A stretch of DNA of 64,000 bases from Pelomyxa schiedti (lineage: Eukaryota; Protista; Evosea): the NCBI GenBank assembly GCA_020536535.1, contig JAHLWZ010000165.1, forward strand, positions 28,361 to 92,360, read 5' to 3'. The stretch's first letter is position 1. Each line of letters begins with the position of its first letter. Positions 26,911 to 31,786 of the stretch are shown here, one piece after another. The translations under genes and the position numbers were made by a program. The notes below the pieces were generated by a model. It was given only the letters and a program-made list of their open reading frames with translations, had not been told where the DNA came from and made no database searches.

Positions 26911-29900
26911 CTAGGAGGCTCTGTCAGCAGCACAAGGGGTGGCTGTAGCGCCCGAGGTTCTCAGCGGTGTGTTGGTTGCGGTGCACGAGGTCCGCAGTGG
27001 GGTGTTTGTTGTAGTTCCCGAGTTTTGCAGTGGAGTGGTGGCGGTTGTGGTTGCGGCGGTCGCGGTGGAATGTGGGCCCGAGGCCCTAAGGTGACCGTTG
27101 GAGGGGGTGGACTGTGGGCCCGAGGCCCGCAGGTGGCCGGTGGCGGGCGGCGACGTGCGCGGCGACGAGGAGAGCTGCTGCTGCCACGATGAAATGTTCA
27201 TCTTGGCGTTGGATATGAGCTCGGACACCTCTGGCATGACACCGGCAAGAGGGTCAAGGAGTGGCATCATCACAAACTGAATGAATGTAGACTGCATTTT
27301 AGCTTGGTTGGTGTTGTGTCTATCCATGAATGGGGAAACATCCATTTTCAAGGATTTCTCCTTGTCTCCTTGGCCAAAAAGTTCTGTCCAATGGTGTAAA
27401 CAGAAATCTGGGTGTGTTGGAAGATACCTGCAACAACTTTATTTGCCCAAACTGATGCAATTTTCCATGGCCTGGACACATTTGATATGTCTGCGACCTT
27501 CAACACAACTCTTTCAAGGGCAAGGCGGTGTTGAGAATTTCCGGAATCAAAGTGGGATACTTTTAGGATGGAGTTGAATTCTCCAATAACTTCGAGATGC
27601 TTGGCCATATCTAAAATAACTCAGGACACAGCGTTATACTTTAATTATTGTACCAGTTGAGAGTATCAGAGTTATCACCGACTTACGGAAAAGGCGAAAC
27701 TGGTCAATTGACAAATGCTTTAGGAAGTTCAAATTCTCCTGCTTCAGGAGTTGGAAGAGTCTCGCTGCATGCATACTCTCTAAGACTGATTGGTCATTAT
27801 ACTGGATGGCCAAGGGATCCATTGAAGATACTAAGAAGTTATTATTTACACCTACGAAAGTCAGAAATGAGGGTGATGACAGGTAAATAACCAGGATGAC
27901 AAAGGTCGTGAGCTAGGGCAGCAATGAGTAAAGCAAGCTTTTCTAAAGGCGGTATATTACATAGAAGCTCTGTACACATAAGCCAATGTACAGCTTGCAT
28001 TACATCGGCTGCGTGGAGACTAAGACAAGGAGGTTAAATACGATAACCCTCAGTTTTTTGTTCGAACCTTGTGTGATAAGGATTCGTATCCACGTAGTTC
28101 TGCTCTGCTACTATAGCAAATCTGATGAATTACGTTACAAGTGAAGAATTTAGAGAGGCCTTATTACGCCATAAAGGTGGCTTCGTCGATTTCAAACTCT
28201 TCAATAAGACCATGGTGTCTAAGCAATAAACAGGCGATGGTACTGAGGGTATGCGCTTCAGCTGTTTGTGTGTACTATAATTTGCTTACTGAACGCAACA
28301 TTAAAGGTTTCCTACCTCAAAGAGATCAAAGCTCCACTTGTTTATTCGATGTTCGGTTACCTTTACACCACACTTAACCACGCCAAAGTTTGAATTGGAG
28401 GGAGTCACAGTCCTGGCAGGAGTACAAAAGGAACCCTACTAACATTAAAGAAATCGGGAAAAACGGGCTGATACTTCAAGTTTCGGAACTAGCTGATCTA
28501 AGAGGAAAGCTTTTGCTTCTGACTCAACGCACATTAGTTGTTGTTCATCAAACTGATACCTACTTAGGTGAGATTTTATTGTTATTCAGAATCGTACAGC
28601 TTCTTCTCTGCAATGAGGTGCTTGATCAATTCTAAGTTCCTAGAACCGTGTGAGTGCCATTTAATTGATCGCGAGTCCAACCTCAATTCATTTGCCTTTA
28701 AATGAGAATTTCCTTGTAATTCCTCTAGCATTTGAATTACGGATTCGGCTTGAGAGGAAAACCCGATGTCCCCTCGCATTTGAATCATTACAGAGAGCTA
28801 TGAAAGATAAGCTACGCTAAGCACAATAGAAAGATACTTGTCTCTGCAGTGCGTCATTGGACTTCTGCAGTTTTCTTCGCTGATGTATCAATAATGCCAT
28901 ACCAACCAAAGATATTCCAAATAGTGCTGCTACACTACACACAATTGCTGGAACTAGAACTTCGGCACTAGGACCCCCATTGGATCTTGCCGGTATCCAT
29001 GTTGCCCATGTCTACAAATTATTAGTTGTATGGCCTCAAAGACTTTCTTACAGCTGTATGATTCTGTAGCCAGAGGCAACTAGCTTCCTCATAAGTGAAT
29101 CCTCTTTCTGCAACGTCATCTGCAAACCAACTTAGTAATCTTCGAAGCTGAGAGAACGCCTACACATAATATCCATTTGGTCCTCATTGGTCAGGGACAA
29201 TTGCTTGAGGAGAGAGAATTCATGAGGAAATTCTGTTGGAAACACAGGCCACAATGCCTTATATAAAACTTCCTCAGGATAGTCACAGAAAACATCAGAA
29301 GAATGCTCATAGCAAGAATCAGTGTAATATGGCAGGGTGACCCGACTAAGAGCATGCTTGAGAAGGTAATGGTGAGGGTCCCACAAATAAAACACTATGC
29401 ACTGGTGCAATTCAAATGCTTCATCAATCTTTGCAAGTAATACAGATTCATCAGTCGGTACTACCGCGAGATTCCACCCATTGCTTCGGCAAATTTGTTC
29501 ATCAAAAGTGGCCCACGGTGAAGACCATAAAGTATGATTAACAGCTGTAAAGAATTCCTCCCTCTCAGAGGGACTCATCCCGACAAAATTATCTGTAACC
29601 AATATTAGTGCATTAAGAGGGAAGAAAGAAAGCACGTACCTGCCCGCGGGTACCTCTCAAGGCAAAATGTAGGGATGTACCAACCATTTCTTCCAATTAC
29701 TCCCAGGGGTCCCCCATTAATAACTTGCCCACTCCCAATGTAAGCTTCTTTATCTTGCTCCTCTCCTGAGGTCCAAACTTCCAAAGCAATATGCCCTGTG
29801 CCCTCTCTTAGAAGCTCCCATTTTTCGTGATTATCTACAACTGTTGTCTGTTGAGTGTCAGTGTAGAATATCCAAAGGTTAAGTAAAAAAAAACTCACAG

Positions 29901-30102
29901 TAACAGCAGTGCCCAACTTTTCCTGTAGCAAAATTGTGGCTAGTGCCAAATTGACGTCGCTGGCCATCCAGTAGCCGCCCACAATTGCGACGGAGCGGCT
30001 CCCGTCCGGAGTGTACCGATCTTGGAAACAAACACTCGACGCCACCGGCAGGCCTAACGCACACACAAGTAAGAAAAGAAGGCCCCCGTTGTAGTTGCTC
30101 AT
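26911..30102 (-). CDS. Single-pass membrane class I cyclic-nucleotide phosphodiesterase with extracellular ABC-type (OpuAC/glycine-betaine-like) substrate-binding domain
   Basis: Signal peptide MSNYNGGLLFLLVCALGLPVASS. Ectodomain LEVW, GPLGVIGRNGWYIP, VFYLWDPH, CDYPEEVLYK. TM VLVPAIVCSVAALFGISLVGMALLI-HQRRK. PDE motifs PYHTSLHAADV, HDLCHPG, YNDQSVLESMH, TDMAKH, ADISN, QSTFI. Confidence 0.88.
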
Positions 30103-30506
30103 CCTGAAGATCCCGCAGGTCGCACCCCTAGGACCTACTTTTTCCTTTTCTCGTCGTACCGCGAAGTGATGTTTGCTTGCAAAGAAAAATGCATTTTTCT
30201 CGGATGAGCTCATTGAAGTAGGTTCGAGTTAATCAAGATCCACCAGAATCAATCGGGAAACGGCTCTTTTCGTTGCTTTGTCATTGTCTTTTTCCACGCG
30301 GGTCAAATCAGGAGGCTTCGAAGAGACGGGGGGGAGTCTTGTTCAGTTGAGTCGGGGAGACCCAGACAACACCAGACAACACACAGGTGTGATGTGGTTC
30401 ACAGAGCAGGTCTGCTTATGACAGCGACTCCTGGCAAATTACTCAAAAGGAAAAAATAAGCTTGTTTTCATCACTTTCAAGGAAGGTGCCAAGAGCCAAT
30501 CAAACA

Positions 30507-31786
30507 ATGGAGGTTCGGGCGGTCGTTATCGATAGTGGCACTGGAACCTGCAAGGCCGGTTTCGCTGGCGATGCTGCACCTCGTGCCATAATTCCCGTGA
30601 GTGATTTCTCACCACGCTACTCCACGCGGCGGGGGTGCTATGGGGATTTTTTTCCCCCCTGACCCCTGAGACTCATCCCCCCCTTCCCTCCAAGAGCGTC
30701 GTCGGTCGGCACAACCTCAGCAGCGCCGAGGTCCAGGAGCGGGAGATCAACGCCGTCTGCCCCTACGTCGGCAACGAGGTCCACAGCACCGGCTGGCGCC
30801 ACATCCTGAGCCTCAAGCACCCCATCGAGCGCGGCGTAATTACCAGCTGGGGAGACATGGAGGCCGTGTGGCACCACGCGTTCCACTCGCAGCTCCGCGT
30901 CTTCCCAGAGGAGCAAAACGTCCTGGTCACCGAGGCCCCGCAGGCCAGCCCCAGGCCCAGCCGCGAGAAGGTGGCCCAGATCATGTTCGAGTGCTTCGCG
31001 GTCCCGGGCCTGTGCGTGGCGGCCCAGGCGCCCCTGGCCCTGCACGCCTCGGGCCGGGCCACGGGGCTGGTGCTGGACTCGGGCGAGGGGGTCACGCACA
31101 CGGTCCCCGTCTGCGAGGAGGGCTGCGCGGCCGCCCCCGGCGCCGCCCTCAGGCTCGACCTCGCCGGGGGCGATCTCACGGCCTACATGGAGAGAATCCT
31201 CGCCGACCGCGGGCACTCGCTCCAGAAGGAGCCCCCCGTGGCCAGGGACATCAAGGAGAAGCTGGGATATGTGGCTATTGACTTTGATGCTGAAGTGATG
31301 CACCACACAACGCCGTCACCATCACCATCACCATCACCATCTTCGGCTTCGGCTACTGCTGCTTCGTTTGAGAAGAGATATGAGCTTCCTGATGGACAGG
31401 CAATCATGATTGGGAACGAGAGTTTCATGTGCCCAGAGGCCCTGTTCCGGCCCTCGCTGATTGGCATGGAGGCTGTGGGTATCCACGAGACTTGCTACAG
31501 CTCCATATCCAAGTGTGACGTCGAGATCAGGGGCAGAATGTACGGCAACATCCTGCTATCTGGTGGCACGACAATGTTCCCAGGACTTCCTGCAAGACTT
31601 CACAAGGAAATGACAGCCCTTGCCCCGCCAGGCACAAGGGTCAATGTAATAGCACCACCGGGTAGGCAGAACTACGCGTGGGTCGGTGGATCGAACCTAG
31701 CATCACTCAGCACTTCGCAGATATGGATTACAAAGGAGGATTATGACAATTCCGGCCCTTCTGTTGTACACAGTAAGTGCTACTAG
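30507..31786 (+). CDS. Divergent actin / actin-like protein
   Basis: [61 protein letters not shown]; one intron at about 30597-30693. Confidence 0.92.

Follow-up and report, generated by a model that had tools for sequence, protein, structure and literature searches.

Receptor cyclases make cyclic nucleotides in response to ligands outside the cell, and direct receptor control of cyclic-nucleotide breakdown is known only for light, in the rhodopsin phosphodiesterase (Rh-PDE). Could an extracellular small molecule control breakdown as well? The question is raised by a gene of Pelomyxa schiedti (Archamoebae, Amoebozoa), a free-living anaerobic amoeba whose assembly comprises 52.4 Mb in 5,337 contigs. 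The stretch analysed here, called the window, consists of 64,000 nucleotides of contig JAHLWZ010000165.1 (positions 28,361 to 92,360), and the gene occupies window positions 26911-30102 on the minus strand, from ATG to TAG, with 15 exons and 14 introns. Its product combines an OpuAC/ProX-type solute-binding domain, a predicted transmembrane segment, a linker and a class I phosphodiesterase (PDE). Taken with the mechanism predicted for it, this protein is probably a ligand-controlled, single-pass type I receptor PDE with OpuAC as the sensor, the ligand control of the PDE being the predicted part.

Gene structure and transcript evidence

The exon borders were set by hand from a three-frame translation of the minus strand (30300 to 26700), where the coding frame switches across very short GT..AG gaps, and were then corrected by RNA joints. 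All 14 introns are 38-51 nt long with GT..AG ends, and the exons sum to 2589 coding nt, that is 862 codons plus the stop. One intron, of 42 nt, is in frame, so that its splicing removes 14 codons and it is undetectable from the reading frame alone. The 15-exon product is identical to the database protein P0121 (862 aa), on which the full-length protein analyses were run, and the window gene itself was searched exon by exon. At this exon level, Pfam places OpuAC on exon 3 (25.8 bits, profile positions 142-235) and, weakly, on exon 2 (profile positions 43-99), while PDEase_I is found on four successive exons (profile positions 9-48, 49-113, 116-177 and 179-237). Since the PDE exon matches are collinear beyond chance, they fix the splice phases; exon 1 and the short linker exons gave no Pfam match when searched singly. 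In GenBank, P0121 bears the automatic name 'cAMP-specific 3',5'-cAMP phosphodiesterase 4 [Pelomyxa schiedti]'. The protein was already in public databases, as were its two Pfam matches, which a public collection of proteins provides precomputed, and neither had been remarked upon.

Four public runs of one sample contain the locus (X1-X4) and were analysed as contigs. Those of X1-X3 are colinear with the genome and DNA-like, and show no break between the parts of the gene. The fourth and smallest run, X4, is cDNA-like: its contig record 9 (2,395 nt, 30138 to about 27304) skips ten GT..AG introns of the minus strand exactly at the junctions of the 15-exon model, nine of them predicted beforehand and the tenth being the in-frame intron. 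This record unites the exons of ectodomain, transmembrane segment, linker and PDE, and these four parts are therefore encoded by one spliced mRNA, as the preliminary description of the window had supposed from the letters alone. Agreement comes from Mastigella eilhardi, whose Trinity transcripts P0003 and P0112-P0114 carry OpuAC and PDEase_I within one open reading frame. A second X4 contig continues to 26858, the first having ended at 27304-27331. The contigs break at this point because a 32-nt stretch (27302-27333, equal to 2628-2659 of paralogous locus L001) is common to the paralogue and creates a branch in the k-mer graph, not a transcript end; it is the sole exact stretch of at least 25 nt that the two paralogues have in common.

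Other features of the same contig sit less easily with the fused product. Four of the 14 introns are retained (29012-29051, 28560-28597, 28122-28167 and 27852-27891), and each adds stops. In addition, X4 has 3 nt for the genome's 4 at 30046-30049 (one missing, three substituted), at codons 18-19 within the signal peptide, which would disrupt the reading frame that starts at the 30102 ATG; X1-X3 match the window sequence there, and the variant may be an error of amplification or assembly, or else mark a defective allele. The contigs give no proof that the fully spliced mRNA dominates. It could accordingly be argued that the fusion is not the main product and that the PDE is silent or made separately: retention of 29012-29051 would stop the protein right before the transmembrane exon and yield a free, secreted OpuAC ectodomain, and the sole RNA-derived contig retains this intron together with the three others. 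We regard this as very unlikely. Ten introns are spliced in that very contig, including the one between the transmembrane exon and the linker and others across the PDE, and the four retained introns are gaps also in the closer paralogue, on contig C265. Splicing of 27852-27891 (the E11/E12 splice) is needed for the PDE profile to continue, the PDE exons are conserved between paralogues (see below), and the Mastigella transcripts are fully joined. Contigs built by k-mers from low-depth amplified single-cell cDNA often hold unspliced paths, and we read the retention as such paths, though it may also be regulated.

The origin of the sequence offers a further way to explain the fusion away. Pelomyxa has bacterial and archaeal endosymbionts (PMC10579272) and the assembly derives from amplified single cells (PMC8887013), which would allow for an assembly chimera between a solute-binding protein gene of a symbiont and a PDE gene of the amoeba, or for two neighbouring genes taken for one. 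This reading is effectively refuted. Spliceosomal introns within the OpuAC region mark a eukaryotic nuclear gene, and a six-frame Pfam search of the genome finds OpuAC at exactly three loci, each with the same order of parts, the PDE exons lying on the strand of the OpuAC match and 1-2 kb downstream of it. The fusion recurs in a second genus, the three DNA-like runs pass unbroken between the parts, and the spliced contig joins them.

Predicted topology, ligand pocket and catalytic domain

The preliminary description had listed a signal peptide, an ectodomain of about 300 aa of the OpuAC/ProX type, a single transmembrane helix with an RRK stop-transfer, a helical linker, a PDE with intact motifs and the absence of a cyclase domain, and all of these were borne out. 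In particular, hydropathy, on which the topology assignment is based, gives two hydrophobic segments only upstream of the PDE. The first peaks at aa ~4-28, in keeping with the signal peptide, and has an N-terminal hydrophobic counterpart in paralogue P0001; the second spans about aa 318-347 (windows 316-329 above 1.6) and is followed, still in exon 5, by the stop-transfer HQRRK at aa 346-350. Two NHT sequons and conserved cysteines are confined to the ectodomain, which fits an extracellular location; the cysteines recur in the paralogue, and some of them also in Mastigella and in the family at large. The predicted arrangement is thus a single-pass type I topology, with a cleavable signal peptide, the ectodomain outside, one transmembrane helix and the PDE in the cytosol. 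Were an alternative in-frame ATG upstream, at 30213, to be used, the first hydrophobic segment would become a signal anchor and the topology would be unchanged. At the other end of the protein, the low-complexity tail contains two short imperfect repeats (GHLRASGP.. twice and T.NTPLRTS.. twice) with locally higher GC content, and is not conserved in the paralogue (alignment A2).

The full-length match to OpuAC (PF04069) scores 53.2 bits against a cut-off of 21.2 and covers profile positions 10-256 of 257; the paralogues and the Mastigella protein score 58-107 bits. An AlphaFold2 model of the ectodomain (aa 20-340, 36-row alignment) reached a mean predicted local distance difference test (pLDDT) score of 93.3 and a predicted template modelling (pTM) score of 0.86, and the fold is modelled as the two-lobed periplasmic-binding one. 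The top Foldseek match in the PDB is 4XZ6 (TmoX, which binds trimethylamine N-oxide, TMAO; E 3e-21, TM-score 0.73/0.79), with further matches to 7YLE (DmpX/dimethylsulfoniopropionate, DMSP), 3L6G (lactococcal OpuAC/betaine) and 2REG (ChoX/choline) and TM-scores of 0.62-0.83. No other fold appears in the top 50, and those of the 50 that were solved with a ligand have a quaternary-amine or sulfonium compound bound. Solved solute-binding proteins are only 9-24% identical to it, 7YLE and 4XZ6 being the closest of them by sequence. A search of the ESM Atlas gave no usable match.

The binding pocket can be compared residue by residue with those of solved proteins. The DmpX pocket comprises Trp35, Thr64, Trp84, Glu113, Trp152, Ala153, Tyr200 and Trp202 (PMC10030565), which correspond in the same order to W45, N74, W93, N122, W164, A165, Y206 and W208. 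The box of TmoX (Trp55/102/177/222 plus Glu131; PMC8918994) aligns likewise with W45, W93, W164 and W208, Glu131 corresponding to N122. Together with Y206 and W124, these four tryptophans form an aromatic cage, and the four-Trp cage is shared by 28-36 of the 36 family members, depending on the position. In solved proteins the four-Trp box belongs to binders of trimethylammonium or dimethylsulfonium heads (PMC10030565, PMC8918994), and the cage suggests a cationic ligand with such a head here, no single compound being named. Two polar contacts are changed, however, and count against a straightforward transfer of the ligand: DmpX Thr64 is replaced by N74, and DmpX Glu113/TmoX Glu131 by N122. Neither TMAO nor DMSP can therefore be predicted straightforwardly, and another compound may be the ligand. 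At these two sites the window gene and its close paralogue both have Asn/Asn, and the paralogue on contig C1006 and the Mastigella type have Glu/Ile, which suggests that ligand specificity differs between these two sub-lineages.

These differences leave room for a receptor PDE that responds to a different small cation, to a partner peptide or protein, or to ionic strength. The Asn residues in place of the DmpX/TmoX contacts, the variation of specificity within the family and the low identity to solved proteins would all be in line with such a ligand. The four-Trp box of trimethylammonium and dimethylsulfonium binders is nonetheless intact here and in nearly all relatives, and we consider a different class of ligand improbable.

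The catalytic domain matches PDEase_I (PF00233) with 260.2 bits against a cut-off of 24.8, over profile positions 1-237 of 238. Its motifs are YHTSLHAADV (533-542), HDLCHPG (573-579), LESMH, TDMAKH, ADISN and QGDKE, and the invariant purine-scanning Gln is Q736, within KMQSTF. The metal-binding His/Asp/Glu residues, the substrate motifs and this Gln all align with PDE4 structures, and the domain is predicted to be a catalytically intact cAMP/cGMP hydrolase. Compared with PDB sequences, it is closest to PDE4 (~1e-55 to 1e-56), followed by PDE9 and PDE7 (~1e-52). OpuAC and PDEase_I are the only families that pass the Pfam cut-off in P0121, with no cyclase, GAF, PAS or REC domain above it; UCR1/UCR2 of PDE4 were not found, Pfam at E up to 1 returning OpuAC, PDEase_I and noise. 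In PDE4 the clamp that fixes the invariant Gln for cAMP is Tyr329 of PDE4D2, and this position aligns with Ala in the Pelomyxa protein (WKIASVW versus LRLYRKW). The predicted preference for cAMP or cGMP is thus not fixed by homology, 'PDE4' is a best-hit label only, and judging from the alignment the assignment as 'cAMP-specific PDE4' is not supported.

Linker, paralogues and relatives

The two other Pelomyxa loci repeat the design of the window gene. In the copy on C265, all exons of a 14-exon model are matched in the same order at 30-92% identity, while the copy on C1006 has the same order of parts and is more divergent. The database protein of the latter, P0005, goes under the name 'glycine/betaine ABC transporter substrate-binding protein'; its annotation stops at PDE profile position 104, the genomic PDE exons on C1006 running on to profile position 237, beyond the P0005 model. 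The GenBank names of all three Pelomyxa OpuAC-PDE genes are misleading. Between the window gene and the C265 copy, the proportion of nonsynonymous differences (pN) is 0.17 for the ectodomain, 0.10 for the linker, 0.12 for the PDE and 0.32 for the transmembrane exon; the synonymous proportion (pS) is 0.73-0.88 for the first three and 0.62-0.88 with the transmembrane exon included. The linker has a nonsynonymous rate (dN) of 0.11, and as the synonymous rate (dS) is saturated between the paralogues, pN and pS are given instead of a dN/dS ratio. Low pN relative to pS in ectodomain, linker and PDE indicates that all three are kept by purifying selection, and the introns of the paralogues are ~50-60% identical, about background.

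The linker, a conserved region of about 110 aa between the transmembrane helix and the PDE, contains the blocks AESxIxML (378-388), LELIKHLIAEKKLYQF (402-417) and EAKAFLLDQ (428-436). For the second and third blocks the consensus reads L-E-x-I-x-x-I-A-x-K/R-K-L/I-Y-x-F and E-x-x-V/A-K-x-F/Y-L-F/L-D, with residues invariant between Pelomyxa and Mastigella (alignment A2). When two copies of aa 330-795 were modelled, the interface score ipSAE was 0.80, against 0.00 for the best control, with a predicted interface formed by linker residues 376-418 and PDE residues 589-642. At least 64% of the contacts are common to the runs, and the partner has a pLDDT of 77 or more. The mark by which dimers were recognized was reached by 21 of 30 microbial proteins solved as pairs of one chain and by none of 23 single-chain proteins; in eukaryotes it is weaker (17 of 29 paired, 0 of 30 single-chain).

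Several observations on this region weigh against reading it as the transducer of a receptor. The linker has no relative in the PDB at E up to 10, a search of the Pelomyxa genome with it matches the C265 paralogue only, and the putative transducer role is read from position and conservation only. An AlphaFold2 model of transmembrane segment, linker and PDE, made from a 6-row alignment, draws the linker as helices and is unreliable (pLDDT 48.7). The dimer score, in turn, may reflect PDE dimers of solved structure that the model had learned, and would then express likeness to dimeric PDEs, not binding.

A constitutive, membrane-anchored PDE would account for part of these data. In such a protein OpuAC would serve localisation, adhesion or the capture of a nutrient or osmolyte, and breakdown would be set by expression or cytosolic inputs. 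Many PDEs are membrane-tethered without being receptors, the functional tie between the two domains is a predicted one, and the Ser/Thr-rich C-terminal tail could carry control by phosphorylation. We nevertheless find this unlikely, given that purifying selection acts on cage, linker and PDE alike in the two paralogues, that the linker is more conserved than the transmembrane exon, as expected of a transducer and not of a passive tether, that the fusion is kept in Mastigella, and that the same ectodomain clade occurs on kinases and related ectodomains on cyclases and G-protein-coupled receptors (GPCRs), all classic signalling outputs.

The distribution of the ectodomain bears on the receptor PDE reading more widely. 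A HMMER scan with exon 3 over 1.84 billion representatives found 110 proteins, and OpuAC is combined with PDEase_I in three of them, P0001 and P0005 of Pelomyxa and P0003 of Mastigella eilhardi. The other long relatives carry different outputs (examples are P0012, P0051, P0045, P0076, P0035, P0073, P0063 and P0015): protein Tyr or Ser/Thr kinases in Mastigamoeba and Pelomyxa; class III cyclases in Naegleria, in Capsaspora 'NPR2' (with kinase-homology and HNOBA domains) and in several metagenomic proteins; 7tm_3 GPCRs in Hondaea, Pyxidicula and MMETSP transcripts; and, further, RasGAP and Ephrin_rec_like/TRP-like proteins. A word-indexed protein search with the P0001 ectodomain, whose limited sensitivity does not allow absence to be concluded, returned two Pelomyxa proteins only.

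In a quick maximum-likelihood tree, the four PDE-linked and two kinase-linked ectodomains of Archamoebae form one clade (SH-aLRT, the approximate likelihood ratio support, 96), with an amoebozoan GPCR and a RasGAP protein as sister. The cyclase-linked ectodomains form a separate clade and free solute-binding proteins of ~330 aa a third, the two source-named members of the latter coming from Chloroflexota metagenome-assembled genomes. The kinase rows are long-branched, and the tree does not set the PDE rows off from the kinases as a group of their own. Judged from this tree, Archamoebae appear to possess a clade of OpuAC receptors whose common sensor is coupled to a PDE in some members and to a protein kinase in others, and outputs appear to have been swapped on a shared sensor within the lineage. 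The family clearly exemplifies sensor-output shuffling, one kind of ectodomain being found on PDE, kinase, cyclase, GPCR and RasGAP.

In the 52 Mb of the genome PDEase_I has 145 exon matches, and cyclases occupy at least 15 loci. For an amoeba that lives anaerobically this is a very large set of cyclic-nucleotide enzymes, and three PDE copies stand in tandem at C463:14936-23794. The Mastigamoeba genome paper likewise reports expanded guanylate cyclases and PDEs in free-living Archamoebae (PMC8136499). As to another extracellular sensor family, dCache_1 has three weak matches in the genome, all on contigs without PDE matches at that sensitivity.

Known designs, predicted mechanism and genomic surroundings

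Rh-PDE of choanoflagellates was the only sensor-PDE fusion, and the sole characterised class I PDE with a membrane sensor, found in the literature search. Like the Pelomyxa protein, it joins an N-terminal membrane sensor to a C-terminal class I PDE in the same chain; its linker has ~76 residues, and when stimulated the protein breaks down both cAMP and cGMP (10.1101/2020.04.14.040642; PMC12004702). The sensor is however a multi-pass, light-gated microbial rhodopsin, whereas the Pelomyxa protein has an extracellular binding domain on a single pass and is presumably gated by a chemical; Pfam finds no rhodopsin family in it, and one transmembrane segment only follows the signal peptide. No sequence likeness could be shown between the two linkers, that of Pelomyxa matching nothing in the PDB.

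The receptor guanylyl and adenylyl cyclases have a signal peptide, a periplasmic-binding-type ectodomain, one transmembrane segment and a cytosolic cyclic-nucleotide enzyme in common with the Pelomyxa protein, and they work as dimers. The cyclases Capsaspora 'NPR2' (XP_004364868.1) and Naegleria XP_002669895.1 even have the same Pfam ectodomain, OpuAC; to our knowledge such OpuAC cyclases are annotated and not characterised. The difference lies in the output, which makes the messenger in the cyclases and destroys it in Pelomyxa, where the kinase-homology and HNOBA domains are also lacking.

OpuAC N-termini have been described on class C (glutamate-type, 7tm_3) GPCRs of fungi and protists (PMC3251606, PMC3971589), and this seems to be the only eukaryotic OpuAC fusion described in papers. 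These receptors likewise use OpuAC as a eukaryotic extracellular sensor, but are 7-transmembrane G-protein couplers with no enzyme in the same chain. Since the OpuAC family is already found on class C GPCRs and annotated receptor cyclases, the 'mirror image' of a receptor cyclase is literal and not unprecedented in principle. Cluster-F solute-binding proteins (TmoX 4XZ6, DmpX 7YLE, OpuAC 3L6G/H, ChoX 2REG, ProX) resemble the Pelomyxa domain in fold and four-Trp cage; they serve ABC importers, either as free proteins or anchored by a lipid, whereas the Pelomyxa domain is fused to a transmembrane segment and a PDE and has extra conserved cysteines, N-glycosylation sequons and N74/N122. No permease or ATPase domain was found in P0121 by Pfam. 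PDE4, finally, is closest in catalytic-domain sequence and differs in its UCR1/UCR2 and clamp Tyr.

Reviews that treat the signalling roles of solute-binding proteins are confined to prokaryotes (PMC8050422). The full-text literature, in which subscription journals are mostly uncovered, yielded no description of an OpuAC-PDE or of a chemoreceptor-type class I PDE, and the earlier statement that no characterised example was known stands within that scope. The OpuAC-PDE is thus a new sensor-output pairing on a known single-pass receptor-enzyme design.

The following mechanism can be proposed for the receptor PDE. The four-Trp cage of OpuAC would bind a small cation headed by a trimethylammonium or dimethylsulfonium group, such as betaine, choline, carnitine, TMAO or a DMSP-like compound; the ligand would close the OpuAC lobes and thereby change the packing of the receptor homodimer; the transmembrane helices and the conserved linker helices would relay this change to the paired PDE domains; and cyclic-nucleotide hydrolysis would be raised or lowered. 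Regulation could go in either direction. A bolder claim, which we advance tentatively as a real possibility, is that this is the first chemoreceptor-type class I PDE, that a quaternary-amine ligand switches its hydrolysis, and that it belongs to a larger, so far undescribed set of receptor PDEs in Archamoebae. As a matter of speculation, a surface-controlled 'off' enzyme may serve chemotaxis, towards decaying matter or prey, or osmotic sensing.

If true, control at the cell surface would in protists extend to the 'off' arm of cAMP/cGMP signalling, which would fit the large PDE and cyclase expansions in free-living Archamoebae (PMC8136499). OpuAC ligands are simple, cheap and cell-impermeant, and OpuAC domains have already been engineered into sensors (the precursors of iAChSnFR and iNicSnFR are in the PDB). 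An OpuAC-PDE could thus become a small-molecule-gated, chemogenetic partner to the optogenetic Rh-PDE.

Table 1. Coordinates of the receptor PDE gene, its product and its paralogues (window positions unless a contig is named)
Feature	Position	Strand	Basis or remark
Exons 1-5	30102-29899, 29847-29640, 29592-29164, 29119-29052, 29011-28838	minus	
Exons 6-10	28797-28682, 28639-28598, 28559-28475, 28435-28316, 28274-28168	minus	
Exons 11-15	28121-28068, 28019-27892, 27851-27654, 27610-27428, 27383-26911	minus	
Predicted signal peptide, aa 1 to ~23	30034-30102	minus	hydropathy; hydrophobic core LLFLLVCALGLPVA, then SS
OpuAC/ProX-type solute-binding ectodomain, aa 45-299, exons 1-4	29064-29970	minus	Pfam, AlphaFold2, Foldseek
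Predicted transmembrane helix, ~aa 321-345, exon 5	28886-28960	minus	hydropathy
Juxtamembrane helical linker, aa 362 to ~470 (~110 aa), exons 6-9	28352-28797	minus	alignment A2
In-frame intron, 42 nt	28640-28681	minus	joint in X4 contig; missing from P0121
Class I PDE catalytic domain, aa 533-764, exons 11-15	27208-28078	minus	Pfam, PDB alignment
C-terminal Ser/Thr/Pro/Ala low-complexity tail, aa ~775-862	26914-27175	minus	sequence, alignment A2
32-nt stretch identical to C265 paralogue	27302-27333	no strand	contigs of all four runs break here
Paralogue L001	C265:15033-17367		database protein P0001
Paralogue L002	C1006:22385-25119		database protein P0005

The neighbouring genes encode actin, Rpp40, GNAT and Kelch proteins, with no permease or ATPase gene among the neighbours tested. 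The actin gene (window 30462-31786, plus strand) is divergent and starts ~360 nt upstream of the ATG of the PDE gene; its product matches Pfam Actin with 291 bits and has an unusual Pro/Ser-rich insertion within the actin fold.

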